A stretch of 64,000 bases of DNA, taken from the sequence record AP017925.1. One strand, given 5' to 3'. Shown piece by piece: positions 4,734 to 35,721 of this stretch (position 1 is its first letter; each line of letters opens with the position of its first letter). The notes beneath the pieces are model-generated. The model did no database searches. It was not told the DNA's origin and saw only the letters and a list, made by a program, of their open reading frames with translations. Made by a program: the position numbers and the translations under genes.

Positions 4734-4809
4734 TGGCTCCAAGGGCTGGGTTCGAACCAGCGACCAACGGCTTAACAGGCCGCTGCTCTACCGACTGAGC
4801 TACCTCGGA
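4734..4809 (-). tRNA. trnN: tRNA-Asn (anticodon GTT)
   Basis: 76-nt canonical cloverleaf: TCCGAGG/CCTTGGA, D-arm GCTC/GAGC, anticodon loop CT-GTT-AA, T-loop TTCGAAC, encoded CCA. Confidence 0.97.
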
Positions 4810-14233: not shown

Positions 14234-14746
14234 TTAGGCAGTATTGGCCAGGATAGCGATCGTCAGATCGGTAAGCGTGGCATCTTGCGTAGATGGCAGG
14301 CACTTCATGGCAAATTGGTCGCCCGGGTTGAGTAACAGGTCAGTTGCCAGAGTAAACGTGCCGTTGGTCGCATTCGCAGCAAAGTTCAGCGTACCAACCT
14401 GTACACCGTTCTTCATAATCGCAATGTCGAACGAAGCAGAGGCTGCAATACTACAGAAAGCAAAGCTACCCGGACAGCCAGCCAGAATCTTGACTGTGCG
14501 AACAGAAATCGCACGCATCAAGATTTCCTGTACGAGCGGCTTGCCGTTGATGAAGTTGTGAAAGTCATAGGTAGACGGACCAGCAGGTCCTTGAATACCC
14601 TGGGAGCCCGTCGCTCCGGTAGCACCCTGCACACCTTGCGGGCCCGCAGGCCCGGCAGGCCCTTGGGGTCCCGCAGGAATAGCGGCTACCTTGCCATCGA
14701 CATAGCCTTGCGATGCGAGCGCTTTGCCATTAACAGGAAAAGTCAT
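14234..14746 (-). CDS. short collagen-repeat structural protein (170 aa)
   Basis: About 11 GXY triplets (GPQGPAGPAGPQGVQGATGATGSQGIQGPAGP) followed by a beta-rich C-terminal domain. Confidence 0.75.
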   Translation of the reverse strand: MTFPVNGKALASQGYVDGKVAAIPAGPQGPAGPAGPQGVQGATGATGSQGIQGPAGPSTYDFHNFINGKPLVQEILMRAISVRTVKILAGCPGSFAFCSIAASASFDIAIMKNGVQVGTLNFAANATNGTFTLATDLLLNPGDQFAMKCLPSTQDATLTDLTIAILANTA

Positions 14747-21235: not shown

Positions 21236-21517
21236 TTACCGCCAGTGGAACCCACCGCCTTTGCCGCCGCCATTCGACATTTTGACAAAATTGCAGCGAG
21301 AAGCAATCGTTGCAGCCACAGGCACAATCCCAGGCGCAACCAGTTTAACACTGGCCTTGACGCGTTGAGTCAAGAGCGGTTTCCCGCTCACGACTTTTGC
21401 TTTCACGCGCTTAAATGCCAGTTGGTTGACGGTGGCCTGGCCATGCACGCTAACCACTTGGTTCTTTACAGTCCCAGGGTCAAACGTGACGCGAGACGTT
21501 ACCGTTGCTCTGGTCAT
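21236..21517 (-). CDS. small fibre-associated protein with C-terminal GGFHWR (copy 1)
   Basis: ATGA overlap with the 552-aa gene. Ends ...GGGKGGGFHWR*. Confidence 0.7.
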   Translation of the reverse strand: MTRATVTSRVTFDPGTVKNQVVSVHGQATVNQLAFKRVKAKVVSGKPLLTQRVKASVKLVAPGIVPVAATIASRCNFVKMSNGGGKGGGFHWR

Positions 21518-23172
21518 GATGTAGCCGCATCGATCGAAATATCACCAGGAGCGGTGATAGTGAATGGAACCAGCGTCGGGCCAGTAGCAGACGTGGTGAA
21601 CGTCGTCTGAGACAGCGTCACGTTCGTCGACGGCGTCAGCGTCACGTTTGCAGCAACATAGTTACCATTCGCATCCGTTACGGAGACCGTCAGTGTACCG
21701 CTAGCCGGCGCGCCGCTGTACGAGTAGCTGCCGCTATCAAACGACAGGTTGATCGTGTTAGCGGTGCCAGTCGGGTTGATGTACCACAGCTCCCATTCAC
21801 ACATCGTTGCGGGCGTAGCCGAAATCGGGTTGATGTACCAGAAGCGACCAGCGGAGTCAAAGCCATGCGACCAAGCACCGTAATACTGAGTAGCGCTGAC
21901 ACGACCCAGTGTAACAGTGTTGGTCTTATTCAGGACACCACCAGTACCGACCGACCAGAACTCGTAGCGGTCATCGTAGGCAACCACAAAGTTCATGCCA
22001 TTGTCGTCTGCCGTGGTCATCGAGCGCGGGCTCGGTGCCAAGTTATACGTGCCCACGTAAGTGGCTGTATTTTTGTCGGTCAGCTTGTACACGTACATTT
22101 TCTGCAATGCCGTCGTCGGAGTGGCAGCACTGTTTTCGAAGCCGATCACCAGTAGATATTTGTTACCATCCGTGTGGTTGATCAGTTGTACACGCATCAC
22201 ACCGACTTGCGTCAGTGTCATTGGGTTTTGATCCAAGGTCACCAAGTTATTGGTGATCGCTGGTGTTGCGTCCAGGCTACTCATAGCTACGCGATGGATT
22301 TCCATCGCAGTAGCGGAGCGCCAGATCACGTAGGAACTTTTCTCGTTAGAGAGAGTATCCCAAGCAAAGGACGGAGCAGATTGCGCATAACCCATGCCGG
22401 TGCTAATGGTAGAGGCTCCCGCCGGTGCACCCAGCGAGGTCGAGTAGGCAATTGCTGCCAGCGTTGCTTTAGCAACGGCTCGAACCTCCATTGTAGCCTG
22501 AATCGCGCTGGCGCCAACATACGTGTCGACAAAATACCAACGATTGGTGTCTTCGCCGACACGATGCGCGGCGAACATGGGTCCCAGAGCCCTAGAGCCA
22601 AACAAAAGCGTTGTTTGGCCAGCAGTGGTAGTGCCAACAGGAAAGCTTTCAACGCTCGCAGACAGATACGAGTTGCTGTAGTGCCGAGTCATAGCAAGCC
22701 GGCCAGCATTCACCGATGGTAACCAAACAGCTTCATGGTTCCACAGAGAAGTCGTATAGGTACTCGCACTAGCCGGATTACTGACGTTGCCGGTATTCGG
22801 GTCCCAGTCGTAAACCATAGCCAAACCAGCGTCGGAGAAGTTCCGGATATTGCCATTCGGCAACGTCTGATGGCAAATCTCCACGCCGTTCCAGCGACCG
22901 CAAAGCACCATATCGAAATCGCTTGCGATCTGGCCCGGCGAACCTCCAGCAACGTTTGGTGTCATTGGCTGATAACCGCGCATCATTCGAATAGTCCATG
23001 CGTTGTTATACGCCACCGGTGACATGCTCGATGTCATCGGAGCCGCAGGAGCGCCGATGACTTCACTCAGGTCACTTACCCGGTACACTTTGTTATCGAT
23101 GTGCAGGTTATTACCCAACTGAACAGCGAGGCGGTTGGGGAACATGCCCCGATAAGTCTTAAGTTTAGGCAT
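21514..23172 (-). CDS. putative tail fibre / receptor-binding protein, paralogue A (552 aa, divergent)
   Basis: Similar N-terminus (LHIDNKVY vs LYIDGSPY) and C-terminus (WYINP...INLSFDSGSYSYSGAP...GDISIDAA). TAATG-coupled to the collagen fibre gene. Confidence 0.65.
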   Translation of the reverse strand: MPKLKTYRGMFPNRLAVQLGNNLHIDNKVYRVSDLSEVIGAPAAPMTSSMSPVAYNNAWTIRMMRGYQPMTPNVAGGSPGQIASDFDMVLCGRWNGVEICHQTLPNGNIRNFSDAGLAMVYDWDPNTGNVSNPASASTYTTSLWNHEAVWLPSVNAGRLAMTRHYSNSYLSASVESFPVGTTTAGQTTLLFGSRALGPMFAAHRVGEDTNRWYFVDTYVGASAIQATMEVRAVAKATLAAIAYSTSLGAPAGASTISTGMGYAQSAPSFAWDTLSNEKSSYVIWRSATAMEIHRVAMSSLDATPAITNNLVTLDQNPMTLTQVGVMRVQLINHTDGNKYLLVIGFENSAATPTTALQKMYVYKLTDKNTATYVGTYNLAPSPRSMTTADDNGMNFVVAYDDRYEFWSVGTGGVLNKTNTVTLGRVSATQYYGAWSHGFDSAGRFWYINPISATPATMCEWELWYINPTGTANTINLSFDSGSYSYSGAPASGTLTVSVTDANGNYVAANVTLTPSTNVTLSQTTFTTSATGPTLVPFTITAPGDISIDAATS

Positions 23173-26100
23173 TAGTTGTACTCCAAAGTAATCAACATGT
23201 CGGAACCGCTGCTACCCACTACTTGGAGGGAAACATTGCTTCCGGCAGGGAGACTGTTAGTTTCAGCCACATACATGTTGGTTTGACCGGCTGCCAGTGT
23301 GAGCGAGATATTATCGCTCGTACCGTCGGCATGATGGACAACGGCATTCACCACGAGGTCAGTGGTAGCTACCGTACCCAGCTGCAGCCGGATACCAGCC
23401 AAGGCATGGGCATCTGCAGGCGGATACCAATTCATCGGAATCGAAGTGGTCTGAGTGATCGGACCATCGAAGGCAGCGGTCTTCTGACGGGTGAGCGTCA
23501 GCGCAGACCAAGCACCATTCTGACGAACGTAAACACCGTTGTCCTTCGGTGCCTCCAGAACATCTACCGGAATCCAGTTACCATCCTTGCGAGCGTAGAG
23601 CACGTCGTCAAAGTTGGCATCGTAGACGTTACCACCACCAAGGTAACCCAACGCGCTCCAGGCCACCGTAGAGGTTTTCTGGAAGAACTGCAGCGATGCC
23701 GAGTTGAGGAAGTAATCCCCTACAGTGCCGTCGGCAGCCGATGGGTTGCGGGACAGTACGATCCAGCGAGTGCCCGGATCACCCTTGACACCTTGTACGC
23801 CCTGAATACCCTGAGCGCCTTGAATACCTTGAATACCCTGCAAGCCACGCACACCCTGCGGGCCTTGGATCGGACCAACATCGATGAATGCTGTACCTGT
23901 CCATGCCCAACCATGCAGAGTGTCCTGAGCAATGTACATATCGCCAGGATTGGTGGAGGTAGCAGGCAGGTTAGCACTGGTATTAACCGTACCCAAGATT
24001 TTTACACCAGGACCCATCGGACCTTGGTCACCTTGCGGACCCTGAGCACCAGCTGCGCCAGGATCGCCTTGTGGTCCCTGAGCACCAGTATCGCCCTTTA
24101 CGCCCTGCAGGCCTTGGATACCTTGGTCACCCTTGTCACCCTTCCACTGCCCGGCATCAAGCCAGCTGACACCGTTCCACACGAAGAGATGATCGCCTAC
24201 GCGATAAGCATCGCCGATGTTGTTGGTGCCGCTGACAGGCAGGGAATTTTGGTCAGGCAGAATACCAAGCACCTTGATGCTGTTACCGGTATCGCCCTTA
24301 TCACCTTTGTCACCTTTATCGCCCTTCAGGCCCTGGATACCCTGAATACCTTGGATACCTTGTAGACCTTGTGCACCAGTGTCGCCTTTATCGCCTTTGA
24401 CACCCTGTAAACCCTGAGGACCTACCGGACCTTGAATGACACCCATGTCCGTGTACTGTGTACCATCCCAGCCCCAGAAGTGGCCGCCAATCAAATAACC
24501 CTCACCCAGCGTACCGGTAGCCGGCAGTTGCGAGGTATCTGTGAGTGTGCCAACGATACTGATGCCGGGACCCATCGGACCCTGCACACCCTGCGGACCC
24601 TGGATACCTTGGTCCCCTTGAATACCCTGGATACCCTGATCGCCTTTGTCACCTTTAATACCCTGGATACCTTGAATACCCTGGATACCTTGGTCCCCTT
24701 GAGCACCACGGAACGGACCAGCGTTCGTCCAATCAGTGCCGAGGAAGATATAAAGGTCGGTGCCTACAATGTAAGCGTCTTCCTGCGCGGGATTGGCAGG
24801 TAGTGACGGAACGTCCGCCACGACACCTTTGATCGCCAAACCACGCCCCATCGGACCCTGAGGACCGATATCGCCCTTAGCACCGACCAGCGAATTCAGC
24901 CAAGAATTCAGGTCACCTACGTAGCCATTTTCAACAGCCACTTGGTAAGCCGTAAGGCCAGCCGTGCCTTGCAGCGAAGCGATCCACTGGTCAATAGTAC
25001 CAGTGAAACCACCAGCGACGGCAATATCAAAGGCAGAAGCACCGGTGGTGCCGGTATCGCCTTTCAAGCCCTGCAGACCCTGCAGACCTTGAGGTCCAGT
25101 ATCACCTTTCGGACCTTGTACCAAACCGCAATCAACGAAGGCGGTGCCGGTCCACGCCCAGCCGTGCAGTGTATCGAGGGCGATATACATATCGCCCGGA
25201 TCAGTGGAGGTTGCCGGGAGATCCGTGCTGCTCGGAACCGTGCCAAGAATCTTGACGCCCGGACCCATATCGCCCTTGTCGCCTTTCAGGCCTTGGGGAC
25301 CAACGGGACCAATCGGTCCAATCAGAGTAGCAAGCCAGTCGGTCTGCGAGCCGGTAAAGCCATTGGCGACTGCCACATCAAAAGCAGACTTACCAACCAG
25401 CGAAGCCAACCACGCAGTCTGACCGCCTACGAAACCATTCGCTTGCGCAATCTGGTACGAAGACTTACCTTGCAGCGAAGCGATCCACTGCGACAACGTC
25501 ATCGATTGCGGGATCAGGCCAGCATCCTTGGCCAGTTGGTAAGCAGACTTACCTGCCGGACCCACCTGACCCACCGGAACCCAGTTCGTAGCGTCCCACA
25601 CCCACATCACCGAGTCGATGATATACGCGTCGCCCGGAGAGTTGTTCTGCGCCGGAAGATCGCTGGTGGATTGGAACGAACCCTGAACTTTCAGGCCGAT
25701 ACCATCTGCGCCATGCAGAGAAGCCAGCCAATCGGCTTCCGTACCGCCAAAACCAGCCAATTGTGCCAGTTCATAGGCACTCTTGCCTTCGGGACCTTGC
25801 AGGTTGCCGAGATTCACCCACTGACCGCCCGTCACAGCCCAGAATTGCGGCCCGATCAGATAGCAATCGCCTTCTTGCGACGTAGTAACGTCAGGCAATT
25901 GAGATTGATCGGCCACAGCACCAAGCAAACGAGCACCGTTACCGATCGGACCTTGTGCTCCGGTGTCGCCTTTGTCACCTTTCGGGCCTTTGAGCGACGC
26001 CGACCACTCAGCTTCAGTACCCGTAAAGCCACCGGCAACAGCGATATCGTAAGCCGATGGGCCAGTATCGCCTTTGACACCTTGGATACCCTGATCACCC

Positions 26101-26444
26101 GGGATACCTTGGATACCTTGGTCACCTTTATCGCCCTTGTCGCCCTTCAGGCTGGCGACCCAGTCTGCTTCAGTACCGACAAAGCCGAGAGCGACAGCAG
26201 CGTCGTAAGCGCTCTTGCCATCCAAAGAAGCCAGCCATTCAGCTTCGGTGCCTACGTAGCCGGCTTCAACAGCGACCTGATAGGCGCTCTTACCAGCTAC
26301 GAACAGTTGATCCAGAGTGAACTTGACGTTCTTACCATCCTGGACTGCCTCCACCACTTCTGCACCAGTGATCGGTGCAGCAGGCGGCAGGTCGGTAATC
26401 CGATAATACAAGGAGGGATCGAGAGAATTGGGATCGCTCATCAT
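23172..26444 (-). CDS. collagen-like tail fibre protein (1090 aa)
   Basis: Many GXY runs, GKSAY(Q/E/D)xA...G(F/Y)xG...WLASL repeats, and about 6 globular G-x-LP-GD-Y-W modules. Confidence 0.85.
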   Translation of the reverse strand: MMSDPNSLDPSLYYRITDLPPAAPITGAEVVEAVQDGKNVKFTLDQLFVAGKSAYQVAVEAGYVGTEAEWLASLDGKSAYDAAVALGFVGTEADWVASLKGDKGDKGDQGIQGIPGDQGIQGVKGDTGPSAYDIAVAGGFTGTEAEWSASLKGPKGDKGDTGAQGPIGNGARLLGAVADQSQLPDVTTSQEGDCYLIGPQFWAVTGGQWVNLGNLQGPEGKSAYELAQLAGFGGTEADWLASLHGADGIGLKVQGSFQSTSDLPAQNNSPGDAYIIDSVMWVWDATNWVPVGQVGPAGKSAYQLAKDAGLIPQSMTLSQWIASLQGKSSYQIAQANGFVGGQTAWLASLVGKSAFDVAVANGFTGSQTDWLATLIGPIGPVGPQGLKGDKGDMGPGVKILGTVPSSTDLPATSTDPGDMYIALDTLHGWAWTGTAFVDCGLVQGPKGDTGPQGLQGLQGLKGDTGTTGASAFDIAVAGGFTGTIDQWIASLQGTAGLTAYQVAVENGYVGDLNSWLNSLVGAKGDIGPQGPMGRGLAIKGVVADVPSLPANPAQEDAYIVGTDLYIFLGTDWTNAGPFRGAQGDQGIQGIQGIQGIKGDKGDQGIQGIQGDQGIQGPQGVQGPMGPGISIVGTLTDTSQLPATGTLGEGYLIGGHFWGWDGTQYTDMGVIQGPVGPQGLQGVKGDKGDTGAQGLQGIQGIQGIQGLKGDKGDKGDKGDTGNSIKVLGILPDQNSLPVSGTNNIGDAYRVGDHLFVWNGVSWLDAGQWKGDKGDQGIQGLQGVKGDTGAQGPQGDPGAAGAQGPQGDQGPMGPGVKILGTVNTSANLPATSTNPGDMYIAQDTLHGWAWTGTAFIDVGPIQGPQGVRGLQGIQGIQGAQGIQGVQGVKGDPGTRWIVLSRNPSAADGTVGDYFLNSASLQFFQKTSTVAWSALGYLGGGNVYDANFDDVLYARKDGNWIPVDVLEAPKDNGVYVRQNGAWSALTLTRQKTAAFDGPITQTTSIPMNWYPPADAHALAGIRLQLGTVATTDLVVNAVVHHADGTSDNISLTLAAGQTNMYVAETNSLPAGSNVSLQVVGSSGSDMLITLEYN
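23770..26300 (-). repeat. coding repeats: collagen GXY (9-bp periodic GGATACCTT-type), GKSAY repeats and globular modules
   Basis: Visible as repeated ccctggataccttg / tcgcctttgtcacc at DNA level. All in frame within the fibre gene. Confidence 0.85.
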
Positions 26445-26454
26445 TTATCCTTTA

Positions 26455-27003
26455 TTAAGAAATTGTGTTTTCGAGCACGCGAATGCGGAGATTCTGATCC
26501 GTCGGAATCTGACCATTTTCTCCACGTGCAGCCGGTAAAGGAGCATTCGGAGTGTAGGGGAAGAAGTAATCCCCCGGTAGCCATGCAAGCGACGTATCGG
26601 TAATCGTTACGGTAATGCCGTTGATCGGCAGAGTGTCGAGCGGAGTGTCTTCTACCTCGGAGGTCACCAGATCCAGGCCGAGGCCGGCGTTGATCTGGGG
26701 CAGGATAGCGTGCACGGTTGTTGGGAAGGTGATGGGATCAAACGGAACCAACTCCCCCGGGGGAAGACGTTTCAATGCATCGAAGCTCAGTCGCTTGTAA
26801 TTGATGGCCAACGGTTCATCCTGGCGCGTCGTCGTGTATGCTTCGGCCTGCACCGTGGTAGAACCTTCAACGGGTGCAGAACCGAGTTCCGGCGCACCAA
26901 AATTGAAATTCACGGCGCTGGGAAGAACCGGCTGTTGCGCACTACGGATCAACTGTGACAGTCGCGCCTGGCTCGTGCCAGCATAGGGCTTGATACGAGA
27001 CAT
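26455..27003 (-). CDS. putative virion structural protein (~182 aa)
   Basis: Start moved to MSRIKPY. Contains INYKRLSF and ends with a motif (RGENGQIPTDQNLRIRVLE) typical of fibre-adjacent proteins. Confidence 0.55.
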   Translation of the reverse strand: MSRIKPYAGTSQARLSQLIRSAQQPVLPSAVNFNFGAPELGSAPVEGSTTVQAEAYTTTRQDEPLAINYKRLSFDALKRLPPGELVPFDPITFPTTVHAILPQINAGLGLDLVTSEVEDTPLDTLPINGITVTITDTSLAWLPGDYFFPYTPNAPLPAARGENGQIPTDQNLRIRVLENTIS

Positions 27004-27107
27004 TATTCGACCTTGTCTAACTGGTTGAAGAAATAAGCGTAGCACGAGATACGTAAATACCTCGCGCCCATAAAATTGGGAAGCTAAAAAAATACAGGAG
27101 AAACGAC

Positions 27108-27158: not shown

Positions 27159-28361
27159 TTAGAAGCCGAGGTCGATATCCCCACCGATGACTTCTTTCGA
27201 CACGTTCTCAGTGGAGACCGTGTTGATAAGGTACTGGTTGTTGTCCTGTTCTTGCGGAGACGACTGTTTCTCGTTGATGTCGATCCAGTCGCGCATGTAG
27301 TTAAGCGGCAGTTGTTGCGGCATTTGCACGCCCAGTTCCATTTCCACTTCAGCCAGCACACCGAAAGTCACACAAACGTGGCGACCGTTGAACAACGACC
27401 AGTCCTTCAGCTTTTGCGGAGTCACACCCGGCAGTTCATCGCCATCGCTGTGCAAATAGTCAACCCAGGACATTTCATTACGCAGCAGTTCGATCAACGC
27501 GCGAATGATGATCGGACGAACAGCCTGGAATGCAGCGCGACCCCATTCGGTAGCCAACAGGTTACGAAGAACTTCTTCGCCATACGGCACATGGTTGTTG
27601 TACTCGTCGCGTGCGATCAACTGGATAGCCGAGCCAATCGGTTCGAACAGGCCCAGTTCGCAGATACCGAAGGTCACCGCGAAGGAGGCCATGAACTGGA
27701 TACGTTCCAGCATGTACACTGCCGCCACCAACAGCACCACGGCTTGTTCCATTTCCTTGGTGCGCTTGCGGGTGAGTTGCCATTCGAGGCAGGCGGCAGA
27801 AGCTTTCGCGAAGATTTCGCCGACCACCGCCATGCGGCCATGCGCTTCCCGCACCGACAGAATCTCGTTCAGTATTGCCGACGGATCTTCGAACGAACCA
27901 CGCACGATCTCGGAGTAGGTCAGGGCATGCAGGTTTTCGTTATCTGCGATACGGACATAGCCGCAACGGATTTCGGTGGCGGTACAGAACGGCACCATCA
28001 CTTCCGCCAGACCACGAGCAGCAACCGAGTCACCCTCCCACTGCCATGCCAGCGTGCGGATCATCATCCGGTAGATCGATGGCGAGCAGGTCTTGAATTC
28101 CGGCATGCAACGCGAGTAATCAAACTCGTTATGCTTCCAGTCCATCGACTTCAGTTCTTCATAGAGACGGAAGATGTCCGGATACGGACGATGGATGGTA
28201 TCGAGCAGGCCGCCGGGTTGGCCCAAGAACAGCTCGGGCTTTTCGTAGTCGGTCTTGTGAAGGTTGAAGATCGCCGGGTTCAGTGTTTCCCCGCGCTGAG
28301 CCAGCGAGAGGTTAATGTAGTCGACGGTTTCAAAGTTATGCGCTTGTACGAGTTCAGTCAT
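27159..28361 (-). CDS. nrdB: ribonucleotide reductase class Ia beta subunit
   Basis: Di-iron ligands in WEGDS, NENLHALTY (E-x2-H-x3-Y radical Tyr), LERIQFMASF and ARDEYNNH. Confidence 0.93.
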   Translation of the reverse strand: MTELVQAHNFETVDYINLSLAQRGETLNPAIFNLHKTDYEKPELFLGQPGGLLDTIHRPYPDIFRLYEELKSMDWKHNEFDYSRCMPEFKTCSPSIYRMMIRTLAWQWEGDSVAARGLAEVMVPFCTATEIRCGYVRIADNENLHALTYSEIVRGSFEDPSAILNEILSVREAHGRMAVVGEIFAKASAACLEWQLTRKRTKEMEQAVVLLVAAVYMLERIQFMASFAVTFGICELGLFEPIGSAIQLIARDEYNNHVPYGEEVLRNLLATEWGRAAFQAVRPIIIRALIELLRNEMSWVDYLHSDGDELPGVTPQKLKDWSLFNGRHVCVTFGVLAEVEMELGVQMPQQLPLNYMRDWIDINEKQSSPQEQDNNQYLINTVSTENVSKEVIGGDIDLGF

Positions 28362-28498: not shown

Positions 28499-31159
28499 TT
28501 ACAGCTTGCAGGCGCCACCGCCACAAGCGTCTTCCTGCTCAGACTCGACGTACTCGACAGACGGCATCGTGTACAGCTTGATCCAGCTTTCACTGTTCCA
28601 AACGTACCAGGACTCACCGATCAAGTAGCTGTCACCGAAACGATCGCTTCCCTTCGGCAACATGCCTTCCTCTTTCACAGTGCCGCAGCAATGTACCAGG
28701 AACGTATCACCGAACAGTTCACGAGCTTTCACGAAGATCTCGTATGCTTCATCGCCCTCAGTACGGACGTAACCGCCGCTCTCATCCGTGCCGATAGCGG
28801 TCGGAATATTGAGAGCCGCAGTTTGCAGTCGACTGATCACCGCTTTAGTCTCGGTGTTCGCTTCGGCTTCCGTTGCAACGGCAGCTTCTGCTGCACCAGG
28901 AATGCTGGCCACCAGCGACACGGTCGCTTCCATCGACTTGACCTTCGGACGGAGTGAGTTGGTGTAATAACGACTCTTCATGCCCGATGCGATCATGTAA
29001 AGGAAACGTTCCACCACTTCCTTTTCCGTCACGGTCGTTTCGCCGGGAGCGAACTTCCGGTACTCGTCAGCCGAAATACCTTGGTCAGTCCATTTCTGGC
29101 CGAGCGCGTAGAGGTCGATCAGATCCTTGTAGTGCAGATCCCAGACGGACTGGTAGGCGTCACCCAGCAGGTCACCATCCACAGCGGCCCAACGCAGGAT
29201 GTTGTTTTCCCCGTCAGTCTTGGTGATCACCACCGAACGGATCGGATAGATCGAGTTGGTGGAGCCAAGAGCCTTCGACGACGATTCACCCGGCATCATG
29301 GCCGACAACACGCTGTGAGCGATACCACCGTTCGCGATCAGCTCTTGCGACAGAGCATCCCAGTCATAGACGTTCTCGAACTTGCCGATCTTGTCCACAT
29401 TACGGTTGTAAGTCTGCAGCGGAGTCCAACCTTCCGGCCACTTGGTCTTGTGAATCCACGGAGCCAGACCACGTTCCTTCGAGATCTTGATCGAAGCCTT
29501 GATCAGGAAGTACATGTGACGTTCGAAGATGCGGTGGATCTCAGCCTTGCCTTCCAGCGTATCGTAGCGCAGACCCTTACGAGCCATCCAGGTAGCCAGA
29601 CCCATGATGCCCACGCCGGCATTCATGCGCTTGTGCGCGGTGAACTTGAGGTGCGGGAACGGGTACTCGCCGTTGAGGATCGTGTAGTCGATCATCTTCA
29701 GCGCGTAGTAGCAGGCGTCGAGGTACTCGTCGTCATCTTCACCGATGTTCTCGATCGGAATCGCAGCCAGGTTACACATCGCGATTTCGCCGCGACCGTG
29801 ATCTTCCTCGGTGTACAGATCGCGCATGTCGAAGTACGGTGCCTGGATTTCAGCGATTTCCTGGCACAGGTTCATCGAGTGGATGCGGTGATCCGGCGAG
29901 ATCTTGAACGGCGTATGACGGTTGATCTCGTGGATGTTCTGCACGTAGGCCGTGCCGGTATCGAACGCTTCAGCGTACGAGTGCAGCACCAGCTTACGCG
30001 CATTTACGTACTTCTTCGGGAACAGCGGGTTGTCTTCGTACTGCTTGTACAGTTCGACGAAACGCTTGATGTCCGGCGAGAAGAATGCATCGAACAGATC
30101 CGGTGCCGAAAACTCCGTGAAGGTGAAGATGTCTTCGCCTTTCTGGACTTTGGCAGCGAACCACGGGTTTACCAGCATCGAGAAGTGCAGGTCACGCAGC
30201 TGCTTGTCTTCCGGCTGCATCGGGTTGCGATACTGCACGATGTCGATCGCTTCCGGGTCGAAACCACTGAAGCTGGTCGTACCAGCGCCAGCGCGGGCCG
30301 CTTGCTTGTTCGCGATGGTCGCTGCCGCGTTGGCCTTCAGGTAGCGATACTTACCACCGTGCATCACACGACCGCCAGCAATCGGATCACCCACGGTACG
30401 AGTCGAGATGAACGAGCCCAGACCAGCCGAGTTCACGGTCATCATGTACGCAATGTGGTCACCGATGGCCAGCGAGTTGGCATCGTCAGCCGCCGTGAAG
30501 ATGCAGCACGATGCCCAGCCGTTGTGCGGCGTGCCCAGGTACAGGTAGTTCGGAGTCGGCGCCGACAGCTTCTTGCCGGAGAACTTGTCGTAGAACTTGC
30601 GCAACACCTGCATACGGACGGATGGGTCTTCATTTTCCGCCAGCGTCATTGCCATGCGCATATACAGGTGCTGCGGCGTCTCGAAGACCTCGCCAGTCAC
30701 GTGGTTGCGGATCGCGTACTTGTCACGGATCTGCTTGAGTGCAAATTCCGGATAGAAGAAATCCTTGTTGTGATCGATGAGGGATTCGATCTCGGCGTAT
30801 TCCTCTTTGGAATACTGGAGCGGACGCATCAGCGTCAGCCCTTCCAGCTTTTTGTGCTGGTCAAACACCGACGGCGGGTTAATACTGCCGTAAATGTCCT
30901 TGCGATACACAGTCGCAAACAGGCGCCCGGCCATCAGGTAGGCCGGCCAGGTCCGAATTGCCAACAGTTCTTCGATCAGGACGAGCATCAGCTCGCGAGT
31001 GGTGGCCTTTTCAGGCAGTTTTGCAACAGCAGCGAGAGCAGCTTGAGACCAGTCCACACGACCTTGGAGGTGATTGGCGGCCCATTCTCCCCAGCCATTG
31101 AGTTTTGCAGGGATCAGGGGCTCTTCGGAGCCATTCCGTTTGATGAGAGTTTGCAACAT
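28499..31159 (-). CDS. nrdA: ribonucleotide reductase class Ia alpha subunit with a C-terminal insertion
   Basis: ATP-cone-like start (LIKRNG), LSAPTP, WASCC, MNLCQEI (N-C-E), MCNLAA, AMMPGESSS, SRYY and terminal CGGGACKL. Confidence 0.95.
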   Translation of the reverse strand: MLQTLIKRNGSEEPLIPAKLNGWGEWAANHLQGRVDWSQAALAAVAKLPEKATTRELMLVLIEELLAIRTWPAYLMAGRLFATVYRKDIYGSINPPSVFDQHKKLEGLTLMRPLQYSKEEYAEIESLIDHNKDFFYPEFALKQIRDKYAIRNHVTGEVFETPQHLYMRMAMTLAENEDPSVRMQVLRKFYDKFSGKKLSAPTPNYLYLGTPHNGWASCCIFTAADDANSLAIGDHIAYMMTVNSAGLGSFISTRTVGDPIAGGRVMHGGKYRYLKANAAATIANKQAARAGAGTTSFSGFDPEAIDIVQYRNPMQPEDKQLRDLHFSMLVNPWFAAKVQKGEDIFTFTEFSAPDLFDAFFSPDIKRFVELYKQYEDNPLFPKKYVNARKLVLHSYAEAFDTGTAYVQNIHEINRHTPFKISPDHRIHSMNLCQEIAEIQAPYFDMRDLYTEEDHGRGEIAMCNLAAIPIENIGEDDDEYLDACYYALKMIDYTILNGEYPFPHLKFTAHKRMNAGVGIMGLATWMARKGLRYDTLEGKAEIHRIFERHMYFLIKASIKISKERGLAPWIHKTKWPEGWTPLQTYNRNVDKIGKFENVYDWDALSQELIANGGIAHSVLSAMMPGESSSKALGSTNSIYPIRSVVITKTDGENNILRWAAVDGDLLGDAYQSVWDLHYKDLIDLYALGQKWTDQGISADEYRKFAPGETTVTEKEVVERFLYMIASGMKSRYYTNSLRPKVKSMEATVSLVASIPGAAEAAVATEAEANTETKAVISRLQTAALNIPTAIGTDESGGYVRTEGDEAYEIFVKARELFGDTFLVHCCGTVKEEGMLPKGSDRFGDSYLIGESWYVWNSESWIKLYTMPSVEYVESEQEDACGGGACKL

Positions 31160-33759: not shown

Positions 33760-35721
33760 TTAAGGCTCTCCAGTAATGAAGAGGCTGAGGAACACGCGGT
33801 AATCTATAATTTCGATACCGAGCAAGTTGGCTTTGCGGGCATTGCTGCCAGGGCGTTCACCGACCACAACGTAATCGGTTTTAGCACTGACACTACCGGA
33901 CACGAGACCACCAGCTGCCAATACCTTGTTTTCCATGGTATCCCGCGATTCCGGGAACTTACCAGTGAAGACAAAAGTCTTGCCAGCCACACCTTCGATG
34001 GTTTGGATCTCTCCCATTTCAGGAATATGCAGTCGTGCATGGAGATCCATTGCATCCTGCTTCTTCTGCGGGTTCGAGAAGTAGGCAGCGATGTTAGCGG
34101 CCGTACTTGGTCCGACATCTGGTACTTTCAATTCGAGCACCTTGTCTGGCGTGTCGAGTTCGAAGAGTGCCTGGTGCTTAAGAATCCGCTGAGCGAGCTT
34201 TCGCGCAGTTGACTTCCCAACCTCTAGGATGCCCAAGGACATGATGAAGCGATCCATAGTGGTGTCTCGCGAATTCCAGATGGCTCGGTGCAGCTTGGCA
34301 GCCGAATACTCGGTATAACCCTCCAGTTTGGCGATTTCTGCGACTTCTAGCTTATAGAGGTCAGCTGCACATTTCACGATCCCGGCTTTGAGCATGAGAT
34401 CGATCGTCTGCTCAGCCAAACCATCTACGTCCAGTACATCACGCGACACGGCATACGCAATGCTAGCCACTGCCTGTGCTTCGCAGTGCGGGTTCTCGCA
34501 GTAGTAAGCTGCACCGCGCTTCACGATCGGAGTCTGGCAACACGGGCAGTTGGTCGGGAACACTACGGGCCGGGCATCCGGCACAGCCTTGATGAGTTTG
34601 CCAAAGTGAGGAATTACGTCACCCGAGCGATACACCTCGTAGCTATTACCAATCGCGATCTGACGCTCGCGCATGCGGTCTTCGTTGTGCAGTGATACCG
34701 ATGTTACCACCACCCCCATAAGCGGCGTCGCTGTGATCTTCGCAACCGGCGCAATTTCACCAGTACGACCCACCTGGAACACCACATCAACAACCGTACA
34801 TTCACCTTTCGTCGGCGGGAACTTATAGGCGAAGGCCCAACGCGGAGAATGAGACGTTTCACCCAACTCAGCCTGCTTGGCGGTATCATTAATCTTGAAG
34901 ACCATTCCGTCAATGTCAAACGGAATGTCTCCTCGCTCACGGATTTCCGTAATCGAGTCGAATACCTCCTGAATAGAGATGGGCGAAAGGAGGAAACAGC
35001 TAAGCATCGAGAACCCAAGATTCTTGAGCGTTTCGAGCTTGTCGGTGTACGCATTGAAGACAAAGTCAGCTCCTTCGATATCGTAAGGAACAAACGAGAT
35101 GCCGTGCGTAAAGTTGTTGGGCTGGTCGCGGTTGAGCATACCAGCTACCGCATTGCGGCAGTTGGCGTACTTATCCGGACCTGTGTTCATGAACTCCAGC
35201 CAGGCCTTCTTGATCAGCGCTTCCCCACGAACTTCCACCATACCCTTGGCGTCAATTCTATCACGCACAAACTGCGCGGCGTGTTTGGTTACGTCCTCGC
35301 CGTACTCGCCGTCGCCACGTGTCAGTGCACGGGAGAAGATGCCATCGATGTACAGCAGAGATAGCGCCATGCCGTCGTACTTGAATTCGCCGACGACCTT
35401 TACTTCTGGATCGAACTTCGTTGACCAAAGGTTGATCCAACTTTGCAGCTCGTCCTCGTCGAGCGCATTCTCCAGAGAGAGCATCGGGAATTCGTGACGC
35501 AGATGCTCGTTCTTGTTGCTGGCCTTGATAGCACCCACCTTGAACGTCGGAGAGAGTTCCAGCGTTTTGTCCGGATGCTTGGTTTCCCACGCGATCAGTT
35601 CCTTGCGAAGCTTATCGTATTCGTGGTCGGGAATGAGTTCAGTGCCGTCGATGTGGTAAGCACGATGGTATTCCGCCATCTTGCTCGCGAGACTGACGTA
35701 AGACAAGTAATCGTTTATCAT
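33760..35721 (-). CDS. ligA: NAD-dependent DNA ligase
   Basis: YDKL, HEFPMLSLEN, KYDG, TRGDG, EVRGE, RNAVAG, DGMVFK, AYKF, QVGRTG, Zn finger CPCC...C-x4-C, HhH region and BRCT (GKTFVFTG). Confidence 0.97.
   Translation of the reverse strand: MINDYLSYVSLASKMAEYHRAYHIDGTELIPDHEYDKLRKELIAWETKHPDKTLELSPTFKVGAIKASNKNEHLRHEFPMLSLENALDEDELQSWINLWSTKFDPEVKVVGEFKYDGMALSLLYIDGIFSRALTRGDGEYGEDVTKHAAQFVRDRIDAKGMVEVRGEALIKKAWLEFMNTGPDKYANCRNAVAGMLNRDQPNNFTHGISFVPYDIEGADFVFNAYTDKLETLKNLGFSMLSCFLLSPISIQEVFDSITEIRERGDIPFDIDGMVFKINDTAKQAELGETSHSPRWAFAYKFPPTKGECTVVDVVFQVGRTGEIAPVAKITATPLMGVVVTSVSLHNEDRMRERQIAIGNSYEVYRSGDVIPHFGKLIKAVPDARPVVFPTNCPCCQTPIVKRGAAYYCENPHCEAQAVASIAYAVSRDVLDVDGLAEQTIDLMLKAGIVKCAADLYKLEVAEIAKLEGYTEYSAAKLHRAIWNSRDTTMDRFIMSLGILEVGKSTARKLAQRILKHQALFELDTPDKVLELKVPDVGPSTAANIAAYFSNPQKKQDAMDLHARLHIPEMGEIQTIEGVAGKTFVFTGKFPESRDTMENKVLAAGGLVSGSVSAKTDYVVVGERPGSNARKANLLGIEIIDYRVFLSLFITGEP

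Follow-up and report, generated by a model that had tools for sequence, protein, structure and literature searches.

What occupies the unusually long C-terminal tail of a phage ribonucleotide reductase (RNR), and where did it come from? The tail of a class Ia RNR alpha subunit is expected to shuttle reducing equivalents and is normally treated as a short, featureless arm. We analysed a 64,000-nucleotide stretch of sequence record AP017925.1 (the window), which is Ralstonia phage RP12 at 100% identity and in which nrdA lies at positions 28499-31159 on the minus strand. A sequence-only reading had proposed that the NrdA tail captured the repeat module of a collagen-like tail fibre encoded 2 kb away, and had pointed to positions 28574-28759; this interval encodes NrdA residues 801-862, and both the coordinates and the residues quoted were correct. 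Profile and structure comparisons indicate that residues ~820-865 are homologous to one of the two module types of that fibre, and the insertion is old; we propose that the module serves as an accessory contact or self-association knob. RP12, with a 280 kb genome, is a phiKZ-related, nucleus-forming jumbo phage and the type of the genus Ripduovirus in the family Chimalliviridae.

A fibre-type module in the redox tail of NrdA

Judged by its domains, its alignment to Escherichia coli R1, its cysteine pair and the adjacent nrdB, RP12 NrdA is an intact class Ia-type RNR alpha subunit. It matches PF02867 (265.7 bits, E 1e-78) and PF00317 (58.9 bits, E 5e-16), both exceeding the cut-off, as well as phrog_84 (E 1.5e-219), and it aligns with E. 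coli R1 residues 7-735 (E 1.8e-105), keeping the active-site cysteine positions, the NxCxE (N-L-C-x-E) loop and the YY radical-transfer pair. No match to the ATP-cone PF03477 was found in RP12 NrdA at E<=1, though its N-terminus aligns with that of R1; because the ATP-cone is common but not universal, this does not exclude class Ia membership. The body thus resembles E. coli R1 from end to end, and the two also have in common the YY pair, a terminal CX4C pair and an adjacent nrdB, whereas the RP12 tail has predicted helices and a predicted folded beta-module. The alignment to R1 ends at residue 736, beyond which 150 residues remain in RP12 versus 26 in R1. The SRYY motif occupies residues 729-732 (YY, 731-732) and the CGGGAC cysteine pair residues 879-884, with 146 residues between them, so that the tail after YY exceeds that of E. 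coli R1 or of the related phage PhiPA3 by ~124 aa. Both PhiPA3 gp378 and the NrdA of Viktualia come from the same virus family, have the same nrdA-nrdB pair and have a body with ~75% nucleotide identity over a conserved stretch, but at 762 and 764 aa they have a short tail and no insert. The parts of RP12 NrdA are as follows.

28976..31159, minus strand: catalytic body, aa 1-728 (PF02867, PF00317, E. coli R1 alignment)
28895..28975, minus strand: proximal tail segment, aa 729-755, with the YY pair, then a basic stretch and 'SLV' (clade-wide alignments)
28811..28894, minus strand: Ala/Glu-rich linker, aa 756-783, predicted long helix (AlphaFold2 pLDDT 63-77, fragment residues 28-55)
28751..28810, minus strand: disordered spacer, aa 784-803 (AlphaFold2 pLDDT <50 for aa 784-798, fragment residues 56-70)
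28712..28750, minus strand: amphipathic helix before the module, aa 804-816 (helix in both AlphaFold2 models, pLDDT 67-84)
28565..28702, minus strand: single fibre-type B module, aa 820-865, predicted four-stranded beta-meander (profiles, PHROG, AlphaFold2, Foldseek)
28502..28564, minus strand: distal arm, aa 866-886, acidic and flexible, bearing the CX4C redox pair (relatives' alignment, AlphaFold2)

The fibre to which this module is compared (RP12 ORF153) has nine helical A modules (~25 aa) and seven beta B modules (~44 aa) between runs of collagen-type Gly-X-Y (GXY) repeats.

23172-26444, minus strand: collagen-like tail fibre, 1090 aa (PF01391, E 4e-34; phrog_3904 tail fibre, E 9e-301)
25800-25931, 25563-25694, 25119-25256, 24711-24839, 24435-24563, 24144-24278 and 23868-24005, minus strand: fibre B cores (profile searches)

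When the seven fibre B modules were built into a profile and scored against the 806 six-frame segments of the window, the only match outside the fibre was NrdA residues 825-861 (23.0 bits, E 2.8e-6), and the best of 20000 shuffled NrdA tails reached 10.8 bits against the same profile. A profile of 654 modules taken from unrelated proteins only scored the NrdA tail higher still (28.9 bits, E 3.9e-8 in the window), and in the whole RP12 genome (3476 six-frame segments) the fibre and NrdA were its sole two matches (NrdA, E 1.7e-7). The tail-fibre-type profiles phrog_13666, phrog_27485 and phrog_3904 also match the NrdA tail (E 2e-3 to 6e-3), and the five other NrdA copies of the module described below score 20-45 bits against the B-module profile. 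Pairwise identity between the NrdA module and the fibre copies is 21-28% in the module alignment, and the signature positions of the B module are a Gly in strand 1, Leu-Pro, Gly-Asp, a Tyr and paired aromatic residues. Within an 8-row alignment of the NrdA copy with the seven fibre copies, G, L, P and Y are invariant; in a 12-row alignment L-P is invariant and G and G-D nearly so, and the L-P, G-D and aromatic positions are retained in all six NrdA copies.

Two mutually consistent AlphaFold2 models of the tail, made from alignments of 9 and 12 rows, give the insert as a confident four-stranded beta-meander (strands at 823-828, 843-847, 850-854 and 859-864) with a predicted local distance difference test (pLDDT) of 84-93. 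In a Foldseek search of the predicted viral structures in BFVD with this model, the listed matches are mostly phage tail fibres and collagen triple helix repeat proteins (probability 1.00); their E values are 7.5e-4 to 1e-2 with a high root-mean-square deviation, and the RP12 fibre ranks ninth. In the models a long tether carries a folded knob of ~60 aa (amphipathic helix plus beta-meander), beyond which only a short free arm remains. This arm ends in C-x4-C-K-L, and the last 20 aa have a pLDDT of ~52, so the terminal cysteines are a predicted redox pair on a flexible arm.

We conclude from these profiles that NrdA residues ~820-865 are homologous to the fibre B module, and since the copy is single and has no GXY run or flanks, it is best described as a homologous domain in a new context and not as a fibre. 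The proposal that the tail carries the fibre's repeat module therefore stands for B. It does not extend to the A part, which had been read from the likeness of EGDEAYEI in NrdA to EGKSAYEL in the fibre: neither an RP12-based A profile nor one of 364 modules matches the RP12 NrdA tail, and with a profile of 61 direct A-B units only the B part aligns, in all six NrdA tails. Capture of a whole A+B unit is thus not upheld, and the helix at residues 804-816, considered as an A module, was rejected on three negative profiles. Could the resemblance arise by chance or from a misassembly? The module is short and its identity to the fibre copies low, but the profile E values of 1e-6 to 1e-8 with shuffle controls and the independent PHROG and structure-based matches speak against chance, and an assembly chimera is excluded by the recurrence of the same architecture in RP12, RP31, FLC1-1B, FLC4-3B and at least four independent metagenome contigs. 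These results refute both explanations.

The B module family and the age of the insertion

By its profile matches the B module is a common, uncurated module of collagen-like phage fibres. A search of 1.84 billion representatives with its profile gave 3481 clusters at E<=1e-3, and the top 150 clusters have 2-15 copies each, with collagen-type GXY runs in 148 of the 150. No Pfam family covers the module in RP12 NrdA, the fibre or ten module-rich proteins. When the module profile was run against the sequences of solved structures, nothing fell below E 0.1 and the matches were weak gelsolin-like and NEQ068 ones only, and Foldseek gave nothing below E 1 against the PDB, where the top matches (hemopexin and propeller blades) were set aside as generic four-stranded meanders. 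Two other matches were also discarded, a spurious tblastn match in an unannotated stretch of Rhizobium phage RHph_I1_6 that is not an open reading frame, and one in Sinorhizobium phage Phosso, which is an ordinary collagen-like protein. The NrdA tail and collagen-like fibres such as RP12 ORF153 and other phrog_3904 proteins thus have the same ~44-aa module family and signature positions, and probably the same predicted beta-meander, but the fibres have it in multiple GXY-flanked copies within a virion protein, whereas NrdA has one copy, after a helix and without GXY flanks, in an enzyme.

Thousands of fibre clusters carry the module and six NrdAs do, so transfer from fibre to NrdA is well supported by these counts as the sole sensible direction. 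In this respect the proposed domain capture holds up, and the arrangement of the locus bears on whether it was local. All of the genes relevant here, from the ligase through the 552-aa open reading frame (ORF), are on the minus strand, and the start of the fibre gene is 2055 bp from the NrdA stop.

33760-35721, minus strand: NAD-dependent ligase
between the ligase and nrdA, minus strand: several small ORFs
28499-31159, minus strand: nrdA, 886 aa, class Ia-type RNR alpha subunit
27159-28361, minus strand: nrdB, RNR beta subunit, 400 aa (class Ia beta subunit in the RP12 and RP31 annotations)
26455-27045, minus strand: DUF7941-like virion-protein gene directly upstream of the fibre (phrog_20090, E 1e-87, and virion structural PHROGs)
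21514-23172, minus strand: 552-aa ORF (full-length match to phrog_38139, function unknown)

The order nrdA-nrdB-DUF7941-fibre is conserved in relatives, in which the NrdB orthologues match PF00268 and the syntenic DUF7941-like orthologues match PF25613. If a current repeat of this fibre, as an A+B unit, had recently been copied into nrdA, the donor would be at hand, as the fibre is the sole other B-module gene in the 280 kb of RP12 and lies 2 kb away. Beside nrdAB all six carriers have a fibre, with 6-7 B modules in each (three where a contig is cut), and of four module-less relatives two have a B-module fibre beside nrdAB (P0164 and P0160) and two have none within 10 kb (P0156 and P0154); this co-occurrence of 6/6 versus 2/4 is suggestive but not significant at this sample size. 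Against so recent a copy, DNA-level comparison of the NrdA tail with the fibre gene turned up chance words only, none longer than 14 nt. Against the fibre profile the NrdA copy reaches 21-23 bits, far below the 38-76 bits of the fibre copies left out one at a time, and its G+C content at third codon positions (0.72) is like that of the NrdA body (0.75) and not that of the fibre (0.55). When 667 modules were ranked by similarity to the NrdA copy, the best module of RP12's own fibre came 28th and the best FLC fibre module 131st, in line with the higher score of the foreign-only profile. The insert is also common to lineages separated by a synonymous divergence (dS) of at least 0.7 and thus predates their split, and the A part of the supposed unit is undetectable. 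The lack of DNA similarity, the low bit scores, the body-like third-position composition and the divergence of the carriers all argue that the insertion is old and conserved and not a recent copy of the adjacent fibre gene, which leaves recent local recombination an improbable origin. The neighbouring fibre, or its ancestor, remains plausible as a donor, though this is unprovable from the sequences.

Several further features of the locus were observed. In RP12 the start of the 552-aa ORF overlaps the fibre stop by one base and an orthologue follows the FLC1-1B fibre; this gene possibly encodes a fibre-associated distal or assembly protein. At the fibre position after nrdAB, the phage encoding P0156 has a 528-aa protein with a weak C1q match and no B modules (L011:14410-15996), with a GP38-like adhesin gene further on, which suggests that the fibre locus beside nrdAB is itself modular. 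The metagenomic phage encoding P0157 has nrdB called as two successive ORFs of 164 and 226 aa, both matching PF00268, with one break (L010:11850-13056). Elsewhere in the window are a second small collagen-like ORF of 170 aa (14234-14746, minus strand), which has ~33 residues of GXY repeat but neither module type, and a single tRNA-Asn (GTT) gene (4734-4809, minus strand).

Tails with and without the module

In a search with the C-terminal part of the body, of which the best 120 of 410 NrdA matches were surveyed, tails after YY are 80-200 aa long in a jumbo-phage clade, compared with 33-50 aa in homologues from bacteria and less closely related phages. Both ends of these tails, the stretch after YY and the acidic run preceding the cysteine pair, are conserved in the clade, whereas the middle is hypervariable. 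At least six NrdAs in this survey carry the B module (RP12/RP31, FLC1-1B/FLC4-3B, P0002, P0153, P0155 and P0157), all within a small group of chimalliviruses; the count is a lower bound, as a word-indexed search with the tail gave one relative and P0153, P0155 and P0157 surfaced only through a search with the body. The 6 kb compared between RP31 and RP12, which span the nrdA region, are 100% identical. The module is absent from equally long tails in P0154, P0156, P0159-P0165, P0180, P0183, P0190 and others, and PHROG scans of four module-less tails gave no matches.

The segments of the tail differ in how well they are kept. The proximal segment has 53-78% amino-acid identity among module-bearing relatives, and module-less relatives have the same tail start. 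The Ala/Glu-rich linker varies in length and sequence (19-43% identity between relatives, with large indels) and the disordered spacer aligns poorly, whereas the module itself has 34-67% identity between carriers. The amphipathic helix is common to the six module-bearing NrdAs, with conserved F/A/FG positions. The distal arm is 75-95% identical and has the lowest nonsynonymous divergence (dN) of the tail, and nearly all NrdAs of the clade, with or without the module, end in an acidic run and cysteine pair. The module, with a dN of 0.34-0.75, is intermediate between the body (0.11-0.18) and the linker (0.54-1.3); saturation of dS makes the dN/dS ratios rough.

In a neighbour-joining tree of the body (200 bootstraps), five carriers group together with the module-less P0163 as sister, while P0157 falls elsewhere beside the module-less P0159, and monophyly of the carriers is recovered in 0/200 bootstraps. 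Because these sisters of carriers have no module, the enzyme itself does not need it, and the insert is conserved among related phages only in part: six NrdAs have it, but sisters with tails just as long do not. The RP12 and P0157 modules are 63% identical and their bodies 76%, versus 34% and 82% for RP12 and P0153, so the histories of module and body disagree. We infer either repeated loss of an ancestral module or an exchange of tail cassettes between related phages; the discordance among RP12, P0157 and P0153 hints at such exchange or at lineage-specific acceleration, and cassette movement is conceivable because the conserved flanks would allow it.

Other sequence elements were seen in these tails. 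The module-less P0164 NrdA has an A-module-like stretch at residues 758-778 (L014:12272-12334; 9.8 bits, E 0.0045 among 120 NrdAs), the sole non-fibre A match in that 22.7-kb locus, where the neighbouring fibre has nine A and seven B modules; from this weak signal, the P0164 tail may represent a second, independent capture of a fibre module. The string VRLGRR is identical in six otherwise unrelated tails (P0154, P0157, P0159, P0161, P0162 and P0165), and a stretch containing LDLLG recurs among P0160, P0167, P0183 and P0190, three of which have it unchanged and one with a single residue altered; both may be short linear binding motifs. Close NrdA relatives including P0158, P0166, P0175, P0177, P0181 and P0192 are 1030-1180 aa long and several have the intein/endonuclease domains PF14528 and PF14890, so intein traffic and tail remodelling coexist in this NrdA family. 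Neither domain is listed for any of the six module-bearing NrdAs, and RP12 NrdA has no Hint, LAGLIDADG, HNH or GIY-YIG Pfam match at E<=1, in agreement with the earlier remark that the insert lacks intein and homing-endonuclease features.

Possible roles of the module

Taking these results together, we favour, at a probability of roughly 60%, a class Ia-type NrdA with a redox arm lengthened by an old fibre-derived module that serves as an accessory contact or self-association knob. The module would have come from a fibre gene, possibly an ancestor of the adjacent one, and landed in a region of the tail that in this clade seems tolerant of insertions. Its retention would reflect an accessory role, in protein-protein contact or self-association, by which it positions, clusters or partners the enzyme, leaving the terminal cysteine pair free to swing into the active site and taking no part in the catalytic chemistry itself. 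We prefer such a role because the module is more conserved than the linker, is always found with the upstream helix and has its native role in an oligomeric fibre. Several points weigh against it. The knob function is purely something we infer, and the patchy distribution of the module fits a neutral passenger equally well. In the fibre the module probably lives in a trimer, and a lone copy may behave differently. The AlphaFold2 alignments are shallow (seven of their 9 and 12 rows are fibre modules) and the models were judged by pLDDT without predicted aligned error, so that packing of the helix on the sheet and docking to the body lie outside what they show. Finally, the tree is neighbour-joining only, dS is saturated and the survey of relatives covers the best 120 of 410 matches.

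The main rival, in which the module is a neutral passenger of a permissive, fast-evolving spacer that merely lengthens the tether and is conserved just enough for solubility, is possible but clearly the less likely account. It draws on close relatives whose 80-200-aa tails have unrelated content, on the sisters of carriers that have no module and on a module dN 3-5 times that of the body; it sits less easily with family signature positions kept in six lineages, with a module more conserved than its adjacent linker and with a preceding helix that co-occurs with the module in 6/6 cases. A more specific alternative grants the module a function and supposes that the lone B module retains the homotypic contacts of the fibre, knitting NrdA dimers into higher-order assemblies or docking them to a phage structure, either one with B modules or another such as the rim of the phage nucleus, which would spatially organise deoxynucleoside triphosphate synthesis and make the hypervariable tails interchangeable 'address labels' that relatives swap during co-infection. 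The chimallivirus import protein PicA is present in RP12 (bioRxiv 10.1101/2024.03.21.585822), and signals for import are patches on the protein surface, so a role of the module in localisation is conceivable; the full scenario is nonetheless doubtful. The suggestion that the module tethers RNR to the virion, co-assembling with fibre B modules so that the enzyme is carried on or in the particle, is very unlikely. The homology of the module to the fibre's and the adjacency of the genes would fit it, but liquid chromatography–tandem mass spectrometry of sodium dodecyl sulfate–polyacrylamide gel electrophoresis bands from virions of RP31, which is identical to RP12 here, lists 32 proteins including the fibre (ORF150) and neither NrdA (ORF153) nor NrdB, in a band-based analysis of limited depth (PMC5468394 Table S3). 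As for a phage-encoded reductant, a crude CxxC motif scan of RP12 for a thioredoxin or glutaredoxin gave nothing convincing, though such a scan is no proper test.

The contact or self-association knob that we favour can be set beside other additions to RNR. Facklamia ignava NrdB, with glutaredoxin and ATP-cone add-ons, is similar in having a foreign domain on an RNR subunit near the route of electron delivery; there the added domain belongs to the beta subunit, is itself a known redox protein and is reported to have a demonstrated function (PMC6187632), whereas the RP12 module is from a structural protein, sits on the alpha tail and has no redox motif. Phage nrdA genes have also repeatedly gained foreign sequence, as in nrdA inteins and the split NrdA of Aeh1, which is rejoined by interaction domains derived from the mobile element (PMC3045599); by comparison the RP12 insert, which has no intein or endonuclease domains, is an in-frame addition beyond the catalytic body and is not excised. 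By its domain content, then, the RP12 insert is no fibre, no intein and no known RNR accessory domain, and within the limits of our literature search no earlier account of an RNR alpha tail with a module from a structural protein came up.

The B module defined here, with thousands of clusters, no Pfam model and no solved-structure match, is widespread in phage fibres, and the comparison of tails shows NrdA to have there a hotspot for inserting and replacing sequence, distinct from the well-known intein traffic in the gene. In a clade of nucleus-forming jumbo phages the redox tail has become a tether that is long and evolves fast, and in some members it has a predicted folded module borrowed from a virion fibre. 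Should that module mediate contacts, a structural-protein domain would, as rarely happens, have been reused to place or cluster a core metabolic enzyme, and it would offer a handle on how chimalliviruses supply nucleotides around the phage nucleus.

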